Assembly: GCA_907165135.1 (NCBI GenBank)
Contig: OU015566.1
Coordinates: 6,758,001-6,822,000 of the forward strand
Direction: 5' to 3'
DNA length: 64,000 nucleotides
From: Oikopleura dioica
Lineage: Eukaryota > Animalia > Chordata
Position numbers and translations under genes: made by a program. Below, in pieces: positions 6,258 to 36,848 of the stretch. The notes under the pieces were generated by a model that was not told where the DNA came from, made no database searches, and was given only the letters and a program-made list of their open reading frames with translations. Position 1 is the stretch's first letter. The number at the start of each line of letters is the position of its first letter.

Positions 6258-8989
6258 ATGGATATTGGTAGACTTTTATCAGCTGTTTCCGAAGGTAAAT
6301 CAACCGCAAACGATCAATTATCAATGAATCCTAAAAATTCTAGAGCTCGAGGCAATTCAACTCCGAGACTCAAGCGAGTACAAGCCGAAATACGCCAGAT
6401 ACATGTCGGAAATAGCACTTTTAGAGATATTTCCATAAAAAGAAGTGTTATTTTGAGTTAGACGAGATCGTTGCCAATTCCCGGACATGGCGCACACGCG
6501 AGCCCGAGTTTGTTCAGAACACGAACAATCCCATCCGACGAATTGTCGACAACATGCGTGTCGTTCCAAACGAGAAGTACCCAATGATCCCGCTCTCTAT
6601 CGGTGACCCCGCGGTGTATGGCAACTTCGATCCCTCCCCAATCGCCGTTCAAGCTGTCAAAGACGTTCTTGACAACAACAAAGACAACGGCTACGGCCCA
6701 GCAGTCGGAATACCGCTGGCGAGAAAATCCATCGCAGAGTATCTGAAGCCTTTCTTCACTTACGAACCTGATGTGAACAATATTTCCTTGGCGAATGGAG
6801 CTTCCGGAGCGCTTGAATTCGCTATCACTTGTATTGCTGAACGAGGAGACAACATTCTTCTGCCAAGGTAAGTCAATAAGGAGTGGATTTTGGAGTTATC
6901 CCGTTCTCTTTCAAAATTTTTTGCAGCAAAATGAAGACTTTGAAATTACTAGTGAGGAAATTTATTGTTGGGTAAAAGGCCAAAATGTGAGTCTAAAAGT
7001 GTGGCAGTGGGTGAAAAATCTAGATCAGTCTCATGAACAGATTCGTAACGTCTATCGCAGGAGGTGCCTCTTGTTGTTGTTGTTCTTGTGGGACGGGCTG
7101 CTCTTGTCGGGCGGGTTGCCCTGCTTGTTGACGACGAAGAAACTCAGCGTATGCTCGTTGATCCCGTTCAAGGAGTCTTCAAAAGACAGTTTTCTACTGG
7201 AGAAGTTTTCGCCTTACCTTTGAGCGCTTCCGAACTCATTGGTTCCTCTGATAGCTTCTCGTCTTTGAAACCGGCGCATCATTTCTGGGTATCGAAATGC
7301 TCCTCCAAGATTTAGCCAAAGCTGAGCGATTGGGCAAACGCGATACTTCAAGTAGTCGTCAGCTGTTAGAAGGCCGCTTCTTCGGAATATCTTCATTGCT
7401 TCCACGTGGTCACGGACTAAAGCTTTCATTTTTTCCTTTATTTGGGCTTCTGATGACTCTCTAATGAGTTTCTGGATCTTTCGAACAGAAACAAATCCTC
7501 GGTTGTTCAGAAACGCTCGTCGACATTCGCGGCCTAGACGAAACCGGCGATGTGTGATGTTGTATTTCGACTTGACTTCCTTTACTGAAAAAATCGGATA
7601 ATTATTGAGCATACAATTTTAAATTTACTTACGATTATCGACGGCAAAGCAGCAACATATTAAAATTTCGTGGAGACGGCGATTTTCGCGAGCATATCTA
7701 TCGAGCGTGAACGCTTGCATTTCTCAAAATTTCCAACTTTCAATTTTTATCTGAATTTTTATTTGAATGAGAACTTTGATGGAAATTTGATTCTGAGTAG
7801 CCTAAAAATCTAGAGAGTTAATTTCAGTGCGTCTGGAAAATCCCGTTTTTTCATTTGAAGAAAAAATGGCTCGATTCCCTAAAACAAGGAAAACGCTTTT
7901 TCTCACTAATTTCCTAATTTTAGACCTGGATTCCCACTTTACTCAGTTCTTGCCGAAGCTCAAGGGATCAAATGCAAATACTACGATCTCGATCCTAACC
8001 GGGTAAAGAAAATAACGCATTGCGATATCAAATTTATTCTGAGTAGGATTGGGCAGTCGACTACGACAGTCTCGAAAACGCCATCGATGAGAAAACATGC
8101 GCCGTCATCTTCATCAATCCTTCCAACCCAACTGGCGCCGTTTTCAAGCAAAATCACATGGAGCGCCTGGTCGAGCTTTGCGAACAGTACAAGATTCCAA
8201 TCATCGCCGATGAAATCTACGCTGGAATGACATTCCACGACTCTCCTTTTGTTTCCTTTTGCCAGGTTGCTAAGAGGATTCCCGTCATTCATGTTGGCGG
8301 TCTTGCTAAACGATTCCTTGTCCCAGGTAAAAGAGAGGAAAGTAAAGTTCATGGATTGACGGTGCTTTAGGCTGGAGAATCGGATGGTGTGTGGTCCACG
8401 ATCCGATGAGCATTTTCAAAGGAAGATTGACGACCGGGATTAAAAAGCTCGCCACACGCCTTGTTGGTCCAAATAAGCTTATTCAAGTACAGTAAATAGT
8501 TGATTTTTATGTTTATGTCCTCCTAAGGCGGCGATTCCGAAAATTCTATCCATCCCCGTCTCCTGGCACAACGAACAAAATACGAAACTTGAAGAAGCTG
8601 CAGATCTCTTCTACGATGGAATCATGCAAGCTCCAGGACTCATCCCAATCATGCCGTCGGGAGCGATGTACATGATGGTCAAGATTGATTTCTCCCGACT
8701 GGAGAATTTCTCCGACGACATGCATTTCTGCCAGACACTAGTGTCGGAAAAATCCGTGTTTGTCCTCCCTGGAAGCTGCTTCGGCTTCCCAAACTTTTTC
8801 GAGTCGTTATTACGATCCCCAAGGTAATTTTTCTCCAATCTCGTCTCTTTTCAATAATTTTTGTAGGAAAAAATTCCAGAAGCTTGTCAACGAATCGTCG
8901 ACTTTTGCAACGATAATGTGAAAACTGAAAGAAAGAGTAGTCTGAGAAGAACATCAGAACTTCTTGCTGGCGGTTCCGCTAATCTTTGA
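6258..8989 (+). CDS. TAT: Tyrosine aminotransferase (class I PLP-dependent); 5' exon structure uncertain; apparent 1-nt deletion at ~8800
   Basis: NPIRRIVDNMRV, SIGDPAVYGN, NGYGPAVG, GDNILLPR|PGFPLY, INPSNPTGAVF, IIADEIYAGM, GGLAKRFLVPG|WRIGW, PSGAMYMMV, SVFVLPGSCFGFPNFF, last exon EKIPEACQRIVDFC; stop at 8987-8989. Introns of 41-50 nt plus one of ~1.05 kb. Confidence 0.95.
7020..7720 (-). CDS. Orphan ~200-aa, 3-exon gene nested antisense in the long TAT intron
   Basis: Exons 7720-7633, 7584-7218 and 7176-7020, joined by GT-AG introns of 48 and 41 nt whose phases match. Continuous ORF MQAFTLDRYARENRRLHEILICCCFAVDNLKEVKSK...LLERDQRAYAEFLRRQQ...NLFMRLI*. Confidence 0.8.
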
Positions 8990-9136
8990 TACTTCTGCTT
9001 TGAATTAAGAATCGCTTATTTTGAAACGAAAGCAAATAAAGACAATATCATTATAAAAAATATTTAATTTCATTTACTCTGACGACGAGAAAAGAAGATA
9101 CACTGTCATTTCACATGCATGATCACTGGTCATTGA

Positions 9137-9924
9137 TCAGTTTAATTCTCGATCGTGTTGAACCAAGGCGCAGCAATGGCAGAACAAGATGATCATAATA
9201 TCGCTTATAAAAAAATTTGATCCTATTATTTGCAATTATTATTACAAACAATTATTATTATTGCATTATTCACTCACCTCAATTTAGTTCCTTCGATACT
9301 ATGTTTCTCTCGAATAGCAACCCTTTGCTTCCAGGCGATATAATTTGGAAGCTAAAAAAATCTTCTTGGAAGATAATGAATTTGATCGTACGAGAATTGA
9401 TGTCAAGAAGCAGATAGTAGCGAGGATAGCACTCCAGATTGGAAATTTTGGTGCAGCTTTGACCATGTTCGGGTCGGCGAGGAGTGTAGCGCCTTTGTTA
9501 AAAGCATACTTCCAAATTGAAAAACTGAAGTACCCACAACCCTTAAGTTTTTAATAATATCATAAAGTCAAAAATACAAACGCCCAAAGGAAGGTAGTAA
9601 GCACCAACATAAAGAAGACAACAAAGACATGAGTTGCCTTCTTTCAGTCCATCTTGGATTGACTGAATGACGCAGCAAGGAAAGAACATTGCTTGACAAG
9701 AAGTGCCGCATCGCCCGCAACAGCTTTAATTTTGATAATTATCTATTTAAAAGATTTTGCAAAACATGTGCCTTTAGTAAAGACTCTTTACAATATTATC
9801 AGCTCCTTAACAGTGGGTATCTAAATTGACCATCTGGAGACTTGTATTTGAACGACTGTGGCTGCTCTGATACTATAAAGGAACTTGTCTCGATACCATT
9901 CATAGTGGTCTGTAGTGAGCACAT
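9137..9924 (-). CDS. PLAC8/cornifelin-family Cys-rich protein, paralog A copy 1 (intact)
   Basis: Five exons: MCSLQTTMNG...GQFRYPLL-SCCGRCGTSCQAMFFPCCVIQSI...QRVAIREKHSIEGTKLSDIMIILFCHCCALVQHDRELN*. CC-x-FxPC and R..IR..H.I.G...D...FC.CCAL.Q..RE are the PLAC8 signatures. Confidence 0.9.
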
Positions 9925-10007
9925 TGCAGTAGCTCTCGATGATATTCTGACTTGAATCTGAAAGTGCAAAGCGCCCTTGTTCTGCAAAGCTTATAAAATC
10001 GATTGGC

Positions 10008-10766
10008 GAATGACATTCAACGACTCTCCTTTTGTCTCCTTTTGCCAGGTTGCTAAGAGGATTCCCGTCATGCATGTTGGCGGTCTTGCTAAAGGATTCC
10101 TTGTCCCCGGTAAGAGAGAGAAAGCAAAACATGGATTAACGATGCTTTAAGTTGGAGAATCGGATGGTGTGTGGTCCACGATCCTATGAGCATTTTCAAA
10201 GGAAGATTGACGACCGGGATTAAAAGCTCGCCACACGCCTTGTCGGCCCAAACAAGCTTATTCAAGTAAAATCAATAATTGAGTTTTGCGTTTTTAATTT
10301 CTTCAGGCGGCGATTCCGAAAATCCTCTCGATCCCCGTCTCCTGGCACAACGAACAAAATACGAAACTCGAAGAAGCTGCCGATCTCTTCTACGACGGAA
10401 TCATGCAAGCTCCTGGACTCATCCCAATCATGCCGTCGGGAGCGATGTACATGATGGTCAAGATTGATTTCTCCCGACTGGAGAATTTCTCCTACGACAT
10501 GCATTTCTGTCAGACACTCGTTTCGGAAAAATCCGTGTTCGTCCTTCCCGGAAGCTGTTTCGGCTTTCCGAACTTTTTCCGAGTCGTAATTCGATCCCCA
10601 AGGTACTCCAATCTAATCCCTCCTTTTTTAATAGTTTTTATAGGAAAAAATTCCAGAAGCTTGTCAACGAATCGTCGACTTTTGCAACGATAATGTGAAA
10701 ACTGAAAGAAAGAGTAGTCTAAGAAGAACATCAGAACTTCTTGCTGGCGGTTCTGCTAATCTTTGA
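10008..10766 (+). pseudogene. TAT: 5'-truncated TAT duplicate, copy 1
   Basis: Begins at GAATGACATTC (MTF-DSPF) in the middle of an exon and keeps the last three introns. AKR is changed to AKG; ATTACG>ATTCG is a 1-nt deletion before the last intron; one extra 1-nt loss in an A-run at ~10222. Confidence 0.88.
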
Positions 10767-10910
10767 TACTTCTTTTGGAATTACGAATCGCTGATTTTGA
10801 AGCGAAAGCAAATAAAGACAGTATCATAAGAAAAATTGAGATTTAATTAACTCTGACAACGAGAAAAGTAGATACACTGTACTTTCACATGCATGATCAC
10901 TGATCGTTGA

Positions 10911-11721
10911 TTAGTTAACTTCTCGATCGTGTTGAACCAAGGCGCAGCAATGGCAGAACAAGATGATCAAAATATCGCTGAGAAATAATTTAAGTTTAAT
11001 TAATTTAAAATAATTTATTTTATTTGCAATCACTGTTGGGTATTCACTCACCTCAATGTGGTTCCTTCGATTGCGTGTTTCTCTCGAATAGCAACCCTTT
11101 GCTTCCATGCGATATAATTTGGAACCTAGAATCAACTTTTTCGAAAGATAAATTTTCAATGATCATACGAGAATTGAAGTCAAGAAGGAGATAGAACCGA
11201 GAATAGCACTCCAAATCGGAAATTTTGGTGCTGCTATAACCATGTTCGGATCGGCGAGGAGTGTAGAAAGAGAGGAAGCGCCTTGATGACAAGCATACTT
11301 CCAAATGGAAAAACTGAAGTAACCAGAACCCTAAAATTTATTAAGAAGCTCATAAAATATAAGATACAAACGCCCAAGGGGAGGTAATAAGAACCAGCAT
11401 AAAGAAGACACCAAAGACATGAGCTGCCTTCTTTCATTCCATCTTGGATTGACTGAATGACGCAGCAAGGACAGAACATTGCTTGGCATGAAGTACCAAA
11501 TCGCCCGCAGCAGCTTTAATTTTGATAATTATCTATTTAAAAGATTTTGCAAAACATGTGTCTTTAAAATATTATCAGCTCCTAAATAGTGGGTATCTAA
11601 ATTGACCATCTGGAGACTTGTATGTGAACGACTTTGGCTGCTCTGATACTATATAGGAACTTGTCTCGGTACCATTCATCGACGGAATGTTAGAAGTGTT
11701 AACGGTCTGTAGTGAGGACAT
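10911..11721 (-). CDS. PLAC8-family protein, paralog B copy 1 (intact)
   Basis: MSSLQTVNTSNIPSMNGTETSS...GQFRYPLF-SCCGRFGTSCQAMFCPCC...IAWKQRVAIREKHAIEGTTLSDILIILFCHCCALVQHDREVN*. Confidence 0.9.
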
Positions 11722-11984
11722 TACAGTAGCTCTCGATTATATTCTGACTTGAATCTGAAAGTGCAAAGCACCCTTGTTCTGCAAAGCTTCTTAAATCGAT
11801 GGCGAAGTGTTAGCGAGTCATTGCTGCATTATATATGAAGCTTTTCCGGGACGCTCTTGATTAAATTTGCATTGGAACAGCCTCTTTGATCCCTTGAATC
11901 GCAAAAGAGAACACGACAGCAGGTTAGGATTCCGACATTTTTGCTTAAAACCCATTTATTTTTGTTTGAAACAAATTTTTTCAA

Positions 11985-12350
11985 TCACGAAAGAAAATCA
12001 AGCAGTTGATCAGTTGCAGAATCTTCGTTTTGGCTTTCGTCCTTTGCTGTTTCTTCCTCTGGAACAGACACTACTGGAGTTGTCATCTCTAACAAGCCCA
12101 GATCTGTCGATGTGGGAGAATCTTGAGCCTCTGTTTCTTTGCTTTCGACGGAAATTGGCCCAGCTTGGGATATATTTTCCTTCTGATTTTCCGGGTCTTG
12201 AAGGGTGACTGAAACATCTTGGGTGGAAGTTGGAACGTCTTCTGAGGTAATGATTACGTCAGACGAAGGTATTTCTTAATTTTAGTAAATTGAGTTGCTC
12301 TTTTTGTCCTTACCTTCAACAGGGACTGGTAGGTTTTCAACTGAAGACAT
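11985..12350 (-). CDS. Junction-created 108-aa acidic ORF derived from the duplicated amnionless 3' region, copy 1
   Basis: ATG formed at the duplication junction; 37-nt exon, 39-nt GT-AG intron (12275-12313), 290-nt exon: MSSVENLPVPVEEIPSSDVIITSED...SATDQLLDFLS*. Confidence 0.5.
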
Positions 12351-12587
12351 GACTTTTGCAACGATAATGTGAAAACTGAAAGAAAGAGTAGTCTGAGAAG
12401 AACATCAGAACTTCTTGCTGGCGGTTCCGCTAATCTTTGATACTTCTGCTTTGAATTAAGAATCGCTTATTTTGAAACGAAAGCAAATAAAGACAATATC
12501 ATTATAAAAAATATTTAATTTCATTTACTCTGACGACGAGAAAAGAAGATACACTGTCATTTCACATGCATGATCACTGGTCATTGA

Positions 12588-13377
12588 TCAGTTTAATTCT
12601 CGATCGTGTTGAACCAAGGCGCAGCAATGGCAGAACAAGATGATCATAATATCGCTTATAAAAATTTTGATCCTATTATTTGCAATTATTATTACAAACA
12701 ATTATTATTATTGCATTATTCACTCACCTCAATTTAGTTCCTTCGATACTACTATGTTTCTCTCGAATAGCAACCCTTTGCTTCCAGGCGATATAATTTG
12801 GAAGCTAAAAAATCTTCTTGGAAGATAATGAATTTGATCGTACGAGAATTGATGTCAAGAAGCAGATAGTAGCGAGGATAGCACTCCAGATTGGAAATTT
12901 TGGTGCAGCTTTGACCATGTTCGGGTCGGCGAGGAGTGTAGCGCCTTTGTTAAAAGCATACTTTCAAATTGAAAAACTGAAGTACCCACAACCCTTAAGT
13001 TTTTTAATAATATCATAAAGTCAAAAATACAAACGCCCAAAGGAAGGTAGTAAGCACCAACATAAAGAAGACAACAAAGACATGAGTTGCCTTCTTTCAG
13101 TCCATCTTGGATTGACTGAATGACGCAGCAAGGAAAGAACATTGCTTGACAAGAAGTGCCGCATCGCCCGCAACAGCTTTCATTTTGACAATTATCTATT
13201 TAAAAGATTTTGCAAAACATGTGCCTTTAGTAAAGACTCTTTACAATATTATCAGCTCCTTAACAGTGGGTATCTAAATTGACCATCTGGAGACTTGTAT
13301 TTGAACGACTGTGGCTGCTCTGATACTATAAAGGAACTTGTCTCGATACCATTCATAGTGGTCTGTAGTGAGCACAT
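12588..13377 (-). pseudogene. PLAC8 paralog A copy 2 with premature stop
   Basis: Same exons as A1, but TGG>TGA at 12964-12966 (FSI-W-KY becomes FSI*). Confidence 0.85.
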
Positions 13378-13460
13378 TGCAGTAGCTCTCGATGATATTC
13401 TGACTTGAATCTGAAAGTGCAAAGCGCCCTTGTTCTGCAAAGCTTATAAAATCGATTGGC

Positions 13461-14220
13461 GAATGACATTCAACGACTCTCCTTTTGTCTCCTTTTGCCA
13501 GGTTGCTAAGAGGATTCCCGTCATGCATGTTGGCGGTCTTGCTAAAGGATTCCTTGTCCCCGGTAAGAGAGAGAAAGCAAAGCATGGATTAACGATGCTT
13601 TAAGTTGGAGAATCGGATGGTGTGTGGTCCACGATCCTATGAGCATTTTCAAAGGAAGATTGACGACCGGGATTAAAAAGCTCGCCACACGCCTTGTCGG
13701 CCCAAACAAGCTTATTCAAGTAAAATCAATAATTGAGTTTTGCGTTTTTAATTTCTTCAGGCGGCGATTCCGAAAATCCTCTCGATCCCCGTCTCCTGGC
13801 ACAACGAACAAAATACGAAACTCGAAGAAGCTGCCGATCTCTTCTACGACGGAATCATGCAAGCTCCTGGACTCATCCCAATCATGCCGTCGGGAGCGAT
13901 GTACATGATGGTCAAGATTGATTTCTCCCGACTGGAGAATTTCTCCGACGACATGCATTTCTGCCAGACACTAGTGTCGGAAAAATCCGTGTTCGTCCTT
14001 CCCGGAAGCTGTTTCGGCTTTCCGAACTTTTTCCGAGTCGTAATTCGATCCCCAAGGTACTCTAATCTAATCCCTCCTTTTTTAATAGTTTTTATAGGAA
14101 AAAATTCCAGAAGCTTGTCAACGAATCGTCGACTTTTGCAACGATAATGTGAAAACTGAAAGAAAGAGTAGTCTAAGAAGAACATCAGAACTTCTTGCTG
14201 GCGGTTCTGCTAATCTTTGA
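13461..14220 (+). pseudogene. TAT: 5'-truncated TAT duplicate, copy 2
   Basis: As copy 1, with the same ATTCG frameshift; stop at 14218-14220. Confidence 0.88.
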
Positions 14221-14365
14221 TACTTCTTTTGGAATTACGAATCGCTGATTTTGAAGCGAAAGCAAATAAAGACAGTATCATAAGAAAAAATTGAGATTTA
14301 ATTAACTCTGACAACGAGAAAAGTAGATACACTGTACTTTCACATGCATGATCACTGATCGTTGA

Positions 14366-15184
14366 TTAGTTAACTTCTCGATCGTGTTGAACCAAGGCGC
14401 AGCAATGGCAGAACAAGATGATCAAAATATCGCTAAGAAATAATTTAAATTTAATTTATTTAAAATAATTTATTTTATTTGCGATCACAATTAGTGATTG
14501 TAGTATTACTAACCTTAATGTGGTTCCTTTGATTCCATGTTTCTCTCGGATAGCGACCCTTTGCTTCCAGGCGATATAATTTGGAACCTAAAATCACTTT
14601 TTTTCAAAAGATAACTTTTCAATAATCAAACGAGAATTGATGTCAAGAAGCAGATAGAACCGAGAATAGCACTCCAAATCGGAAATTTTGGTGCTGCTAT
14701 AACCATGTTCGGATCGGCGAGGAGTGTAGAAAGAGAGGAAGCGCCTTGATGACAAGCATACTTCCAAATGGAAAAACTGAAGTAACCAGAACCCTAAAAT
14801 TTATTAAGAAGCTCATAAAATATAAGATACAAACGCCCAAGGGGAGGTAATAAGAACCAGCATAAAGAAGACACCAAAGACATGAGCTGCCTTCTTTCAT
14901 TCCATCTTGGATTGACTGAATGACGCAGCAAGGACAGAACATTGCTTGGCATGAAGTACCAAATCGCCCGCAGCAGCTTTAATTTTGATAATTATCTATT
15001 TAAAAGATTTTGCAAAACATGTGTCTTTAAAATATTATCAGCTCCTAAATAGTGGGTATCTAAATTGACCATCTGGAGACTTGTATGTGAACGACTTTGG
15101 CTGCTCTGATACTATATAGGAACTTGTCTCGGTACCATTCATCGACGGAATGTTAGAAGTGTTAACGGTCTGTAGTGAGGACAT
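14366..15184 (-). CDS. PLAC8 paralog B copy 2 (intact, 3' part partly A-like)
   Basis: Open after splicing; ends IREKHGIKGTTLSDILIILFCHCCALVQHDREVN*. Confidence 0.88.
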
Positions 15185-15447
15185 TACAGTAGCTCTCGAT
15201 TATATTCTGACTTGAATCTGAAAGTGCAAAGCACCCTTGTTCTGCAAAGCTTCTTAAATCGATGGCGAAGTGTTAGCGAGTCATTGCTGCATTATATATG
15301 AAGCTTTTCCGGGACGCTCTTGATTAAATTTGCATTGGAACAGCCTCTTTGATCCCTTGAATCGCAAAAGAGAACACGACAGCAGGTTAGGATTCCGACA
15401 TTTTTGCTTAAAACCCATTTATTTTTGTTTGAAACAAATTTTTTCAA

Positions 15448-15813
15448 TCACGAAAGAAAATCAAGCAGTTGATCAGTTGCAGAATCTTCGTTTTGGCTTT
15501 CGTCCTTTGCTGTTTCTTCCTCTGGAACAGACACTACTGGAGTTGTCATCTCTAACAAGCCCAGATCTGTCGATGTGGGAGAATCTTGAGCCTCTGTTTC
15601 TTTGCTTTCGACGGAAATTGGCCCAGCTTGGGATATATTTTCCTTCTGATTTTCCGGGTCTTGAAGGGTGACTGAAACATCTTGGGTGGAAGTTGGAACG
15701 TCTTCTGAGGTAATGATTACGTCAGACGAAGGTATTTCTTAATTTTAGTAAATTGAGTTGCTCTTTTTGTCCTTACCTTCAACAGGGACTGGTAGGTTTT
15801 CAACTGAAGACAT
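15448..15813 (-). CDS. Junction-created 108-aa acidic ORF, copy 2
   Basis: Identical to 11985-12350 at an offset of +3463. Confidence 0.5.
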
Positions 15814-16052
15814 GACTTTTGCAACGATAATGTGAAAACTGAAAGAAAGAGTAGTCTGAGAAGAACATCAGAACTTCTTGCTGGCGGTTCCGCTAATCTT
15901 TGATACTTCTGCTTTGAATTAAGAATCGCTTATTTTGAAACGAAAGCAAATAAAGACAATATCATTATAAAAAAAATATTTAATTTCATTTACTCTGACG
16001 ACGAGAAAAGAAGATACACTGTCATTTCACATGCATGATCACTGGTCATTGA

Positions 16053-16844
16053 TCAGTTTAATTCTCGATCGTGTTGAACCAAGGCGCAGCAATGGCAGAA
16101 CAAGATGATCATAATATCGCTTATAAAAAATTTTGATCCTATTATTTGCAATTATTATTACAAACAATTATTATTATTGCATTATTCACTCACCTCAATT
16201 TAGTTCCTTCGATACTACTATGTTTCTCTCGAATAGCAACCCTTTGCTTCCAGGCGATATAATTTGGAAGCTAAAAAAATCTTCTTGGAAGATAATGAAT
16301 TTGATCGTACGAGAATTGATGTCAAGAAGCAGATAGTAGCGAGGATAGCACTCCAGATTGGAAATTTTGGTGCAGCTTTGACCATGTTCGGGTCGGCGAG
16401 GAGTGTAGCGCCTTTGTTAAAAGCATACTTTCAAATTGAAAAACTGAAGTACCCACAACCCTTAAGTTTTTTAATAATATCATAAAGTCAAAAATACAAA
16501 CGCCCAAAGGAAGGTAGTAAGCACCAACATAAAGAAGACAACAAAGACATGAGTTGCCTTCTTTCAGTCCATCTTGGATTGACTGAATGACGCAGCAAGG
16601 AAAGAACATTGCTTGACAAGAAGTGCCGCATCGCCCGCAACAGCTTTCATTTTGACAATTATCTATTTAAAAGATTTTGCAAAACATGTGCCTTTAGTAA
16701 AGACTCTTTACAATATTATCAGCTCCTTAACAGTGGGTATCTAAATTGACCATCTGGAGACTTGTATTTGAACGACTGTGGCTGCTCTGATACTATAAAG
16801 GAACTTGTCTCGATACCATTCATAGTGGTCTGTAGTGAGCACAT
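16053..16844 (-). pseudogene. PLAC8 paralog A copy 3 with premature stop
   Basis: Same TGG>TGA, at 16431-16433. Confidence 0.85.
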
Positions 16845-16927
16845 TGCAGTAGCTCTCGATGATATTCTGACTTGAATCTGAAAGTGCAAAGCGCCCTTGT
16901 TCTGCAAAGCTTATAAAATCGATTGGC

Positions 16928-17687
16928 GAATGACATTCAACGACTCTCCTTTTGTCTCCTTTTGCCAGGTTGCTAAGAGGATTCCCGTCATGCATGTTGG
17001 CGGTCTTGCTAAAGGATTCCTTGTCCCCGGTAAGAGAGAGAAAGCAAAGCATGGATTAACGATGCTTTAAGTTGGAGAATCGGATGGTGTGTGGTCCACG
17101 ATCCTATGAGCATTTTCAAAGGAAGATTGACGACCGGGATTAAAAAGCTCGCCACACGCCTTGTCGGCCCAAACAAGCTTATTCAAGTAAAATCAATAAT
17201 TGAGTTTTGCGTTTTTAATTTCTTCAGGCGGCGATTCCGAAAATCCTCTCGATCCCCGTCTCCTGGCACAACGAACAAAATACGAAACTCGAAGAAGCTG
17301 CCGATCTCTTCTACGACGGAATCATGCAAGCTCCTGGACTCATCCCAATCATGCCGTCGGGAGCGATGTACATGATGGTCAAGATTGATTTCTCCCGACT
17401 GGAGAATTTCTCCGACGACATGCATTTCTGCCAGACACTAGTGTCGGAAAAATCCGTGTTCGTCCTTCCCGGAAGCTGTTTCGGCTTTCCGAACTTTTTC
17501 CGAGTCGTAATTCGATCCCCAAGGTACTCTAATCTAATCCCTCCTTTTTTAATAGTTTTTATAGGAAAAAATTCCAGAAGCTTGTCAACGAATCGTCGAC
17601 TTTTGCAACGATAATGTGAAAACTGAAAGAAAGAGTAGTCTAAGAAGAACATCAGAACTTCTTGCTGGCGGTTCTGCTAATCTTTGA
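16928..17687 (+). pseudogene. TAT: 5'-truncated TAT duplicate, copy 3
   Basis: As copy 2; stop at 17685-17687. Confidence 0.88.
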
Positions 17688-17832
17688 TACTTCTTTTGGA
17701 ATTACGAATCGCTGATTTTGAAGCGAAAGCAAATAAAGACAGTATCATAAGAAAAAATTGAGATTTAATTAACTCTGACAACGAGAAAAGTAGATACACT
17801 GTACTTTCACATGCATGATCACTGATCGTTGA

Positions 17833-18651
17833 TTAGTTAACTTCTCGATCGTGTTGAACCAAGGCGCAGCAATGGCAGAACAAGATGATCAAAATATCGC
17901 TAAGAAATAATTTAAATTTAATTTATTTAAAATAATTTATTTTATTTGCGATCACAATTAGTGATTGTAGTATTACTAACCTTAATGTGGTTCCTTTGAT
18001 TCCATGTTTCTCTCGGATAGCGACCCTTTGCTTCCAGGCGATATAATTTGGAACCTAAAATCACTTTTTTTCAAAAGATAACTTTTCAATAATCAAACGA
18101 GAATTGATGTCAAGAAGCAGATAGAACCGAGAATAGCACTCCAAATCGGAAATTTTGGTGCTGCTATAACCATGTTCGGATCGGCGAGGAGTGTAGAAAG
18201 AGAGGAAGCGCCTTGATGACAAGCATACTTCCAAATGGAAAAACTGAAGTAACCAGAACCCTAAAATTTATTAAGAAGCTCATAAAATATAAGATACAAA
18301 CGCCCAAGGGGAGGTAATAAGAACCAGCATAAAGAAGACACCAAAGACATGAGCTGCCTTCTTTCATTCCATCTTGGATTGACTGAATGACGCAGCAAGG
18401 ACAGAACATTGCTTGGCATGAAGTACCAAATCGCCCGCAGCAGCTTTAATTTTGATAATTATCTATTTAAAAGATTTTGCAAAACATGTGTCTTTAAAAT
18501 ATTATCAGCTCCTAAATAGTGGGTATCTAAATTGACCATCTGGAGACTTGTATGTGAACGACTTTGGCTGCTCTGATACTATATAGGAACTTGTCTCGGT
18601 ACCATTCATCGACGGAATGTTAGAAGTGTTAACGGTCTGTAGTGAGGACAT
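17833..18651 (-). CDS. PLAC8 paralog B copy 3 (intact)
   Basis: Matches B2 at an offset of +3467. Confidence 0.88.
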
Positions 18652-18914
18652 TACAGTAGCTCTCGATTATATTCTGACTTGAATCTGAAAGTGCAAAGCA
18701 CCCTTGTTCTGCAAAGCTTCTTAAATCGATGGCGAAGTGTTAGCGAGTCATTGCTGCATTATATATGAAGCTTTTCCGGGACGCTCTTGATTAAATTTGC
18801 ATTGGAACAGCCTCTTTGATCCCTTGAATCGCAAAAGAGAACACGACAGCAGGTTAGGATTCCGACATTTTTGCTTAAAACCCATTTATTTTTGTTTGAA
18901 ACAAATTTTTTCAA

Positions 18915-21900
18915 TCACGAAAGAAAATCAAAAAGCTGATCAGTTGCAGAATCTTCGTTTTGGCTTTCGTCCTTTGCTGTTTCGTCCTCTGGAACAGACA
19001 CTACTGAAGTTGCCGTCTCTAAAAGCTCAGATCTGTCGTTGTGGGAGAATCTTGAGCCTCTGTTGCTATGACTTCGATGGAAATTGGCCCAGCTTGGGAT
19101 ATATTTTCCTTCTGATTTTCCGGGTCTGGAAGGGTGACTGAAACATCTTGGGTGGAAGTTGGAACGTCTTCTGGGGTAATGATTACGTCAGAATATGGGA
19201 TTTCTTAATTTTAGAAAATTGAGCTCCTCTGTTGGTTCTTACCTTCAACAGGGACTGGTAGATTTTCAGCTAAAGACGCTATATTTTCGTCCAGAACAGG
19301 TCTGTTTTCAAGGTTCAAAATAGTGCTGTCATCAATACCAGAGTTACTTTAGTCGGTTACGTCGACGATGCACAAGGAGCGTCATTAAGAAGAATCAAAG
19401 GAAGAATTATTCTTTGGCGGAAGTATGTCACGAACCGAGTCCTTTCTTCTGAAAGTTCGTTCGTCTCGAACGAGGGATTTGTGAAGCCAGTAGGAGCGTG
19501 ACGTGCTGCTATCACTTCCTCGCTTTCAAAGTCGACTGCCTCGTCATACCTCGTCGTGCTCTTTTATCTTTGGTCTCTTTCTCTTTTCGATAAGTAAGTA
19601 CTATTTATTTCGTATGAATAAATCGATATCAAAGGGCTCAAGTGATGTAAGATACCTTCCTCGGGATCGTCGTCATTCATTTCGTATGTCACATTATCAA
19701 CACCAGCTCAGGTGGCTTCAAAGAAACTCTTTCTTGTTGATGCTCAAAAAAACTACAATTGTGCAGTTATTGAAGCGTTCCTGATACTGTCGATATTTCC
19801 ACATCTCCTCCTTGATTTCCTCCGTCAAAGTTTCTGACCGTCTTCGCCGGGAAAACCGACAAGAAATAATATTCCAAGTCATATTTGTGATATCCCTTGT
19901 AGCCAGCGAACGCAGCAACTGCTATTGCTAGAATGACGCCGAAAATTGCTCCTCCACTGAGTCCCGATGCATTGTGAGGCCTTCCAGAGATAGTGACCAC
20001 AACGTTTGAAACGCCTGGAAGCTTGCTCACGGCCTTTTTCAAGTTTTGAACTTCGTTTTTCGCCAGTGATCCGGAGCCGTCGGTATCTGTGAGCAGCAGC
20101 TGATATTGATCATCCTATGAAATTATTTCAGCAATTAAGTTTCAGATCGGGAATTAAGCCCGGTATACTTCGATAGAACACCTTTGTTTACGCAAATATG
20201 ATATTTAAAGTAACGAACCTTTGATCTTTTCAGAACTGAAGGATCAAAGTCTTCTTCAAGCGGCGTGATTCTGGCTATAGAGCTTTTACCGGTGTTCTCG
20301 ACTATCAGATTAATTACCGGTAAGATTCGTAAAGATAGTGAACATTATTTCATGCTTGATCACCGATACCTAAGCACTTCTGACGATGATACTTCACCCT
20401 TGACGAGATCCTCCAGATCCTTCCTACGGAAAGCCTACGGGAAAATAAAAAATCTCTACAGCTATTTTTATGAATTACTCCGTCGAAATCAAAAGTGATG
20501 ATTCCGCCGCATACTGAGCAGCAGTGTCCGAAGGGTTCTACAGGTTCATTACAGGCAATGGCTGGTCGATCTGAAATCAAGGGTTTTTTAAGGCTTGTGT
20601 CTTTGTTTTTCCACCTTCAGTGCAATTTACTTGTCGGCAGATGAGCTCTTCAATATATGCTCGTCCATCAAAGTCGTCCTCTCGGCAAGTACACCCAGCA
20701 TCACTTTGAACTCGAGTCAACAATTGATAACTGTCACAAAAGCTATTTTTATTATATTTCTTGCGACACGAGTCCCACAGTCGTGCGCTCGCACATCCAC
20801 CTTTGATTCACCAAACTGAAACGGGCCAGAAACAGAGTTTTGTACATAGTTATTATAATCATCTGTTGAGGACAATCGCTCATTTCCGACGATCATAGAC
20901 TCGATTTTCGGATCTGGAGTGTGCGCCATATTTGGATTTGGAATGGATGGCGGGTACTTGCTTCCTTATCTTGAGTTTTACAAAGAAAGAACTGGACTCT
21001 TTGAGGGCTTGAAAAGCGGAAATATCCATCAATCAACGTTTTATATTCAATAAATATTCTGTAGCAAGGACTCTTTGATTCAAGAGAGTCTTTAAAAACT
21101 CCATCCTGAGACGGAGAACGTCGAATCCTTGGTAGAAAACTGGACCGTGTCAGTTTGGCAAGGGAGTCTTTCTAATCATAAAGGTCTTAGAGACTGTCAA
21201 ACTTGGTGACCTGGGCCCAGAGTCTCACGGACGAAAAGCGGTGCTAGTTGATCAGGCTAGTACCTGATCATTAAAGTTATGGCCTGATATTCTATTAGGT
21301 AATAAATCTGCAATGACACCATGATTTTACGGCTTCGTTATTGCGAAAATATCTGAGCGAAGACCCTGGCTATGTCAAGCATTAGCGCTGGAGCTCCGGA
21401 GACGTCCCAGTTGTTCAAGTCATACCAAGCATCAGGGCCGCCGTTGAACTTGTATTCTCCGTAATCTTGGCATCCTGAAATGGAGATGTCTGTTCCGATC
21501 ACAACATCTTTTCCTTGGAATCAGGGTCTCAATATTATGCAATCGAAAGAAGAAAAAAATAGACAGACCCCGCCCTAGAATGAGCTCAGCATTCCGCGGC
21601 AAGGTCAAATCCGAAACAGTAAAGCTGACATCAACAAGGACTGAGGTTCTTACACGGGCTGATGAAACGAAGATCGATTTCTGCGGAACAGGACAGAATT
21701 TATCACCTTGCCGAATCGATCACAAAATTATGTTGTAAATGAAGAACACCAGCCTTTCATTATCTTCAAATGTTACGACAGAGTCCATACATGGTTTACT
21801 GACATTTTTATTCTGAACAAAATATAACGCTTCAAGAAAACCAACTTCAAATTACCCATCGATTCGTGTCCGAGAACAAAATCTCTTGGTTCCAGCTGAA

Positions 21901-36142: not shown

Positions 36143-36848
36143 GGTTAGATTTTCCGTAAATTAGGTTTTCCGTATGTTAGATTTTCCGTGAGATTTGATT
36201 TTCCGTAACTCACGGAAAATCTAATATACGGAAAATCTAATTTACGGAAAATCGAACATTATCTTAATTAGAGTTGCAAATTTTGTGAGCTAGCTGAGCT
36301 GAGCTATCTGAGCTCAGTAATTTTGAGGTGAGGGTCAGCTCAGCTCAATTTGACCCCCAGGGTTTGAAAAGTGACAAAATTTGACTGAGCATGAGCACGA
36401 TTGAGCATCGGCGTGCTTAAATTTGGTGAGCAGGAGCACGACTGAGCATTGGCGTGCTCTAATTTAGCTGAGCCTGAGCATGATTGAGCACCCGCCTGCT
36501 CGAATTTCGCTGAGCCTTTTGCTCAGACGTGCTCATTTTCAAGACCCCGAAGATTGACTGCATTTTTATCGGTAGCTCTTCGGGATTTTACCCCGAAGAT
36601 TGAGCGTATTTAAAATCGTCTATTCTTCGGGATCCCTACCCCGAAGATTGACCGCATATGTCGGTCAAAACTGTACATTCAGTAATTTTTAATCGAATAC
36701 TTTTCCTTCAGCGATTCGAATTTCCGTAGATTAGATTTTCAGTGACTCAAAGAAAAACTCCGTGAAATTCGATTTTCCGTGAGTTACGGAAAATCTAATA
36801 TACGGAAAATCTAACATACGGAAAATCTAATTTACGGAAAATCTAACC
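36143..36848. mobile_element. Foldback-like composite element with modular TIRs and two internal minisatellites
   Basis: GGTTAGATTTTCCGTAAATTAGGTTTTCCGTATGTTAGATTTTCCGT at the left is inverted at the right; both arms are built from a ~15-bp TTAGATTTTCCGTA module. Internal 41-42-bp x3 and 46-48-bp x3 arrays. Confidence 0.75.

Follow-up and report, generated by a model that had tools for sequence, protein, structure and literature searches.

Within a 64,000-nucleotide stretch of chromosome 1 of Oikopleura dioica OKI2018_I69 (contig OU015566.1, positions 6,758,001 to 6,822,000 of the forward strand; here called the window and numbered from its first letter), a nested tandem duplication occupies positions 8225-19277, between the gene for tyrosine aminotransferase (TAT) and the amnionless gene, and carries six copies of a PLAC8-family gene. 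Self-comparison with blastn revealed two levels of repetition. At the older level, 8225-10010 matches 10008-11806 with 86% identity over 1835 gapped columns; this duplicated stretch of 1.79 kb gave two halves, A and B, the first copy (8225-10010) containing the 3' half of TAT and PLAC8-A and the second (10008-11806) a dead TAT 3' half and PLAC8-B. At the younger level, 8900-15811 matches 12351-19277 with 98.8% identity, and a repeat unit of 3.45 kb with both halves inside it is present three times: unit 1 at 8900-12350, from the self-comparison and a three-way alignment of the units, unit 2 at 12351-15813, which the same alignment shows to be recombinant, and unit 3 at 15814-19277, which runs straight into the real amnionless gene. 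Each unit reads, in order, TAT last-exon stub, PLAC8-A (minus strand), TAT 3' half, PLAC8-B (minus strand), and a copy of the amnionless 3' end. This is the content that an original prediction, made from the letters of the window, had given to the unit, and both the self-comparison and the placement of exons agree with it; the start of the array, which had been put at 8900, lies at 8225 according to the self-match of the older segment, and the description of the three units as nearly identical does not apply throughout, there being pockets of 9-15% divergence.

The two levels were joined in different ways. The older duplication has its left end in a TAT exon at 8225 and its right end in the upstream region of PLAC8, 86 bp from the start codon, and its junction is the trinucleotide GAA at 10008-10010, common to both parental sequences and present as the microhomology that had been predicted there. 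The younger duplication begins at 8900, 33 nt into the last TAT exon, and ends at ~19277, within the penultimate amnionless exon, whose donor at 19242 lies 36 nt farther downstream; its junction consists of the amnionless tail ending in GAAGAC, then AT, then the GACTTTT of TAT and thus contains a 2-nt filler.

Alignment of the six copies, together with the placement of splice sites, yielded a five-exon minus-strand gene in each half, with introns of 40-82 bp and a coding sequence of 585 nt (194 amino acids) in the B copies and 552 nt (183 amino acids) in A1. The introns of O. dioica OKI2018_I69 have a median length of 49 bp, and 11% of them are non-canonical (PMC8008620). In all six copies the donor of intron 1 is GA, and the intron has the GA-AG boundary AG|GAGCTG...AAAG|C (for example, 11581-11514, minus strand); among the non-canonical introns of O. 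dioica, those of the GA-AG type are the most frequent and typically have an AG just upstream of the donor (PMC7072748), as is the case in PLAC8 intron 1. A canonical GT donor was also sought for this intron, and each choice of GT resulted in stop codons in the exon or in the wrong phase. The five-exon model is supported because the exonic differences in length between A and B are all multiples of 3 (21, 12, and 3 nt, compared with 14, 4, 1, and similar values in introns), because the ratio of non-synonymous to synonymous substitution rates (dN/dS) between the halves is 0.30, and because the product modeled for B2 and B3 is identical, letter for letter and across every junction, GA-AG included, to a public protein of 194 amino acids, CAG5105034.1 (g1776).

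Four of the six copies are open. PLAC8-A1 (9137-9924, minus strand) has five exons and 552 nt, with a PLAC8 match in exon 2 at an E value of 0.02, and PLAC8-B1 (10911-11721, minus strand), with five exons and 585 nt, differs from B2 and B3 in three residues; PLAC8-B2 (14366-15184, minus strand) encodes the product found as CAG5105034.1, and PLAC8-B3 (17833-18651, minus strand) encodes a product identical to that of B2. PLAC8-A2 (12588-13377, minus strand) has a TGA in exon 3 at 12966-12964 and an in-frame insertion of 3 nt in exon 4, and PLAC8-A3 (16053-16844, minus strand) has the same two changes, with its TGA at 16433-16431; in both copies the stop is a TGG-to-TGA change. The prediction of six copies, with intact B genes and with the extra A and TAT copies broken, is thus borne out by the alignment and exon model, by the open frames, and by the shared TGA and the frameshifts of the TAT copies, as is the greater age of the A/B split, for which synonymous divergence (dS) between A1 and B1 is 0.24 and nucleotide identity is 86%. 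The suggested comparison of substitution rates gave the dN/dS value of 0.30 for A1 against B1, indicative of purifying selection, and exon 3 alone, for which there is no Pfam match, gave proportions of synonymous and non-synonymous differences of 0.30 and 0.07, respectively. Since purifying selection has acted after the A/B split, A and B were both, by these substitution patterns, functional coding genes for most of the time since then. The halves differ in what lies upstream of them: B keeps the whole ancestral upstream region, whereas A has only 86 bp of it and then the TAT fragment, and loss of this 5' flank could by itself account for A being the more dispensable of the two.

Membership in the PLAC8 family, as originally proposed, was confirmed by a profile search in which CAG5105034.1 matched Pfam PLAC8 (PF04749; gathering cutoff, 34.4 bits) with 60.6 bits and an E value of 2.9e-16, residues 42-192 aligning with profile positions 2-101. 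Searched exon by exon, B1 gave 17.8 bits for exon 2 and 24.1 bits for exons 4 and 5 together, and A1 gave 16.3 and 18.5 bits, the matches being collinear with the profile in both genes; further exon-wise scores were 21.5 bits for exon 5 and 33.6 bits for exons 4 and 5, and a Pfam search with exons 1, 3, and 4 singly returned no match. A motif of the CCxxxxCPC type is found in exon 2 (in every B copy, CCGRFGTSCQAMFCPCC), and a C-terminal cysteine cluster followed by Q..RE is found in exon 5 (in every B copy, FCHCCALVQHDREVN), with equivalents of both in the A copies. The predicted cysteine-rich composition with two hydrophobic stretches is likewise seen in CAG5105034.1, which has 13 cysteines in 194 residues and hydrophobic segments with their centers at about residues 140 and 178, plus a weaker segment at about residue 57. 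Look-alikes in the ESM Atlas, identified by protein-language and structure comparison, are PLAC8 clusters of 194-233 amino acids, with template-modeling (TM) scores of 0.65/0.60 to a cluster of 212 amino acids, and a length of ~194 amino acids is therefore not unusual for a PLAC8 protein. An AlphaFold2 model of CAG5105034.1 computed without an alignment was too poor for use (mean predicted local distance difference test score, 41.8; predicted TM score, 0.28). We infer that the products resemble other family members in being small, cysteine-rich PLAC8 proteins associated with membranes.

The array proteins share with PLAC8/cornifelin proteins the whole domain, the N-terminal cysteine cluster CC-x6-C-x4-CPCC, and the C-terminal motif FCHCCALVQHDRE; unlike them, they have a 41-residue N-terminal leader before the domain and an exon 3 of 50-54 amino acids that, in a search of the whole assembly (64,281,565 bases in 19 contigs, the scope of all our genome-wide searches), matches the six array copies and nothing else. 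Elsewhere in the genome exon 2 has only matches of 41-49%, and a full-length word search of 5.8 billion proteins returned CAG5105034.1 itself and no close relative. By the own-genome and word searches, then, the array appears to constitute a PLAC8 subfamily with no detectable close relative outside the locus. The family as a whole is well represented in the genome, with ~49 six-frame matches, 15 of them above the cutoff, and on the array's chromosome (C4) matches at 11571951 and 11573347 form a tandem pair, 4.7 Mb from the array. Other matches on this chromosome are also closely set (C4:14452751-14455906, C4:11571951-11573484, and C4:11752161-11753641), which suggests further local duplications within the family. 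A search of the literature on PLAC8 in Oikopleura found nothing relevant.

The history of the units can be read from the three-way alignment, which contains 87 variable columns. Between 9215 and 11188 (unit 1 positions) unit 2 agrees with unit 3 and differs from unit 1 in all 51 variable columns, between 12002 and 12350 it agrees with unit 1 and differs from unit 3 in all 32, and the 813 bp that separate these two regions (11189-12001) are without any difference among the units. In its own coordinates, unit 2 follows unit 3 as far as 14651 and unit 1 from 15465 onward, which places the switch within 14652-15464. The private differences of unit 2 comprise two 1-nt homopolymer deletions and no substitution, and the only exception to the pattern, near the start of the unit, is a 2-nt AA indel in homopolymer length (unit 3 positions 15969-15970) at which unit 3 differs from the other two. 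Unit 2 is thus a hybrid with one switch inside a shared identical stretch, as non-allelic homologous recombination (NAHR) would leave it, and a slip in assembly gives the same pattern.

Units 1 and 3 differ from each other very unevenly. Divergence is ~0.8% over 8900-10979, but 35 variable columns are crowded into the 209 bp at 10980-11188, which hold exon 4 of PLAC8-B and the neighboring introns, and 30 into 347 bp of the amnionless tail. Within the first of these pockets, exon 4 of B1 differs from that of B2 and B3 by five synonymous and two non-synonymous changes, and B1 and B2 each have private states as well as states shared with A. The pocket at 10980-11188 may be a tract that gene conversion missed or one brought in from a diverged allele; a conversion tract from A into B1 was weighed as the sole cause and rejected, B1 agreeing with A at ~12 of the 35 columns and B2 at 15. 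Because pockets of 9-15% divergence remain, the simplest reading of the alignment is that the split between units 1 and 3 is considerably older than a divergence of 1% suggests and that the units were later homogenized by gene conversion.

From the junctions and the pattern of divergence we infer the following order and mechanism of events. A tandem duplication of 1.79 kb, comprising the 3' half of TAT and a single ancestral PLAC8 gene and joined at GAA, would have produced A and B. A second duplication, of 3.45 kb, comprising the TAT stub, A, the TAT fragment, B, and the amnionless tail and joined with the 2-nt filler, would have produced a two-unit array, in which gene conversion would then have homogenized most, but not all, of the duplicate. 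In a third and very recent step, unequal crossover within the 813-bp identical stretch, with one chromatid contributing its unit 2 and the other its unit 1, would have added the middle unit. One A copy would have gained its stop codon before being doubled by this crossover, and the B copies, with their full 5' flank, would have stayed open. Since the middle unit would be a crossover product that copies the region concerned, the stop shared by A2 and A3 by all indications represents one mutation, copied, and not two losses. The two rounds of amplification proposed originally fall short of this history, in that the recombinant middle unit and the diverged pockets call for at least three events plus conversion. 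We consider it likely that the locus is a real, locally grown PLAC8 array that arose through at least three ordinary mutational steps and that selection for dosage is not needed to explain it.

Several points weigh against this interpretation. The order of events is taken from divergence that gene conversion has blurred, and the number of units is as given by the assembly sequence; the GA donor of PLAC8 intron 1 is without the usual downstream A; and, of the genes in the array, the public protein set yielded only g1776, with no separate entries for A1 and B1, so that these two copies stand as predicted genes. In addition, the mosaic that is observed in the middle unit is the same as the expected product of a slip by one unit. 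This last point bears on the explanation that best survives beside our own, namely, that the middle unit is an artefact and that the true locus has two units, the merging of haplotypes or the joining of contigs having slipped inside the 813-bp identical stretch. The OKI2018_I69 assembly was built from Nanopore reads with Canu and HaploMerger2 from a genome of ~3.6% heterozygosity (PMC8008620), and a middle unit with two differences in homopolymer length and no private substitution is what such a slip might leave behind. A slip between haplotigs would, however, join allelic copies, which would be expected to be unlike at a heterozygosity of 3.6%, and unit 2 and unit 3 are free of substitutions over the 2.3 kb of their left parts; moreover, the array is ~10 kb long, well inside the reported read lengths (PMC8008620), and extra allelic copies of the locus were sought elsewhere in the assembly and none was found. 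We regard an artefactual middle unit as unlikely, if still worth bearing in mind. As judged by their sequence, the two types of junction and the diverged pockets mark the A/B split and at least two units as real.

The proposal that extra copies of PLAC8-B were selected for their dosage, for instance in metal or stress tolerance, at a locus that varies in copy number in populations, draws on the three open B copies, on the purifying selection between A and B, on the abundance of PLAC8 genes in this genome with another tandem pair on the chromosome, and on the established proneness of such arrays to change in copy number through unequal crossover, but we consider it very improbable, given that B2 and B3 are too recent for their intactness to be informative about selection, that the broken A2 and A3 reflect one mutation copied by crossover, and that the likeness to plant PCR metal-resistance proteins comes down to a shared PLAC8 domain. 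The contrast between intact B and broken A copies, which had been offered as a sign of selection for B dosage, loses its force once the stop in A2 and A3 is counted as one copied change and the 86-bp flank of A is taken into account. In plants, PLAC8 proteins of the PCR, FW2.2-CNR, and MCA types are associated with metal resistance, cell number, and Ca2+ influx, respectively. The array proteins resemble them in having a PLAC8 domain with hydrophobic stretches flanking it or inside it, but what is shared is the domain at the level of the family, and the plant MCA and CNR13 clusters in the Atlas reached TM scores of only 0.47-0.49 by query, below 0.5; an inference of function from the plant proteins is not justified. 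It is just as improbable that the locus is a copy-variable, actively recombining one in wild O. dioica, with PLAC8-B dosage under selection and with amnionless and the minus-strand series B-A-B-A-B-A forming one transcription unit; on this same reading, the new frame made at the junction from the amnionless tail (11985-12350 and 15448-15813) would count as a gene that arose from a duplication scar.

The array that we favor as real and locally grown is an ordinary case of a PLAC8-family gene multiplied in tandem, if one that is unusually easy to read, and not a new kind of system. It resembles other arrays shaped by NAHR and concerted evolution in its head-to-tail units, in its hybrid unit with a single switch, and in its mixture of homogenized and non-homogenized patches, and it is unlike them in that the first two steps were not driven by homology, with 3 nt of microhomology at one junction and a 2-nt filler at the other, features in which these junctions are like those of duplications that arise by end joining or replication-based mechanisms. 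Within 11 kb of a genome that is among the most compact in animals, the locus thus preserves, in compact and fully readable form, the growth of a small gene family, first by two non-homologous duplications that left scars and then by homology-driven unequal crossover with patchy gene conversion. What is known of PLAC8 function is unchanged by it. For annotation, it flags three matters: only one of four open PLAC8 copies was found among the public proteins, TAT reads as frameshifted, and the C terminus of amnionless differs between the gene and its copies.

The parent TAT gene lies at 6554-8989 on the plus strand, with its last exon at 8867-8989 and its stop codon at 8987-8989; its identity is supported by Pfam Aminotran_1_2 matches on three exons, the copied exon matches the TAT structures 3PDX and 3DYD in the PDB at E values of 1e-16 to 1e-17, and the 5' exon is unique in the genome. 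Truncated TAT 3' halves, recognized by alignment and by the Pfam match on the copied exon, are found on the plus strand at 10008-10830, 13461-14285, and 16928-17752. They start in mid-exon, at the site that matches 8225, and have lost everything 5' of this breakpoint; AA stands in place of AG at the acceptor that follows, 1 nt has been lost after the RVVI codons, and the fragment in unit 1 has one further 1-nt deletion. These internal pieces are without a promoter of their own and are, to judge from the lesions, dead fragments. The sole TAT gene itself reads as frameshifted in its penultimate exon (8789-8830, plus strand), where after ...GFPNFF the frame reads ESLLRSPR and then a stop; the alternative frame, FRVVITIPK, matches mouse TAT (PNFFRVVITVPE) and includes the conserved arginine. 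The site of the apparent frameshift is a T5C run at 8795-8800 that reads 1 nt short, and the dead copies have CC there; it reflects a very recent lesion or else an error, of homopolymer length or of polishing, within repeated sequence. The poly(A) signal at 9035 (plus strand), for TAT, and that at 9068-9063 (minus strand), for PLAC8-A1, point toward each other and lie within ~30 bp, and the predicted 3' ends of the two genes, whose convergence had been suggested as a source of double-stranded RNA, could share at most a few tens of bases, an arrangement that would be commonplace in so compact a genome.

On the other side of the array, the 3' part of the real amnionless gene occupies 19019-20580 on the minus strand, the stop of its last exon ending at 19019, and Pfam PF14828 (cutoff, 30.4 bits) matches 20350-20580 (minus strand) with 36.1 bits. 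Copies of its 3' end lie on the minus strand at 11985-12350 in unit 1 and 15448-15813 in unit 2, each with a two-exon open frame: the filler at the unit junction creates a minus-strand ATG (12348-12350 and 15811-15813), which opens a frame of ~98 amino acids consisting of MSSVENLPVPVEG and the amnionless tail, with predicted splicing at the donor and acceptor of amnionless. In the real gene, the last exon (19019-19170, minus strand) ends at a TAG (TDLSF*) with a 1-nt deletion directly after it, and the internal copies (11985-12241 and 15448-15704, minus strand) have an open frame that is 34 codons longer and ends in DFLS*. Because the residues of this longer ending are still readable in a shifted frame of unit 3, the gene-linked end looks like the altered version.

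An acceptor-like CACTTTCAG lies ~37 nt upstream of each PLAC8 start codon (9925-9965, minus strand, and the equivalent positions). Amnionless and the six PLAC8 genes all read from the minus strand, and it is conceivable that a spliced-leader acceptor is used or that these co-oriented genes are transcribed in an operon-like manner. Beyond the array, a cluster of short tandem arrays at 36144-36846 of the window is composed of 16-nt units (TTAGATTTTCCGTAAA) and their reverse complement, together with a 42-nt unit, and by its layout looks like an inverted-repeat element.

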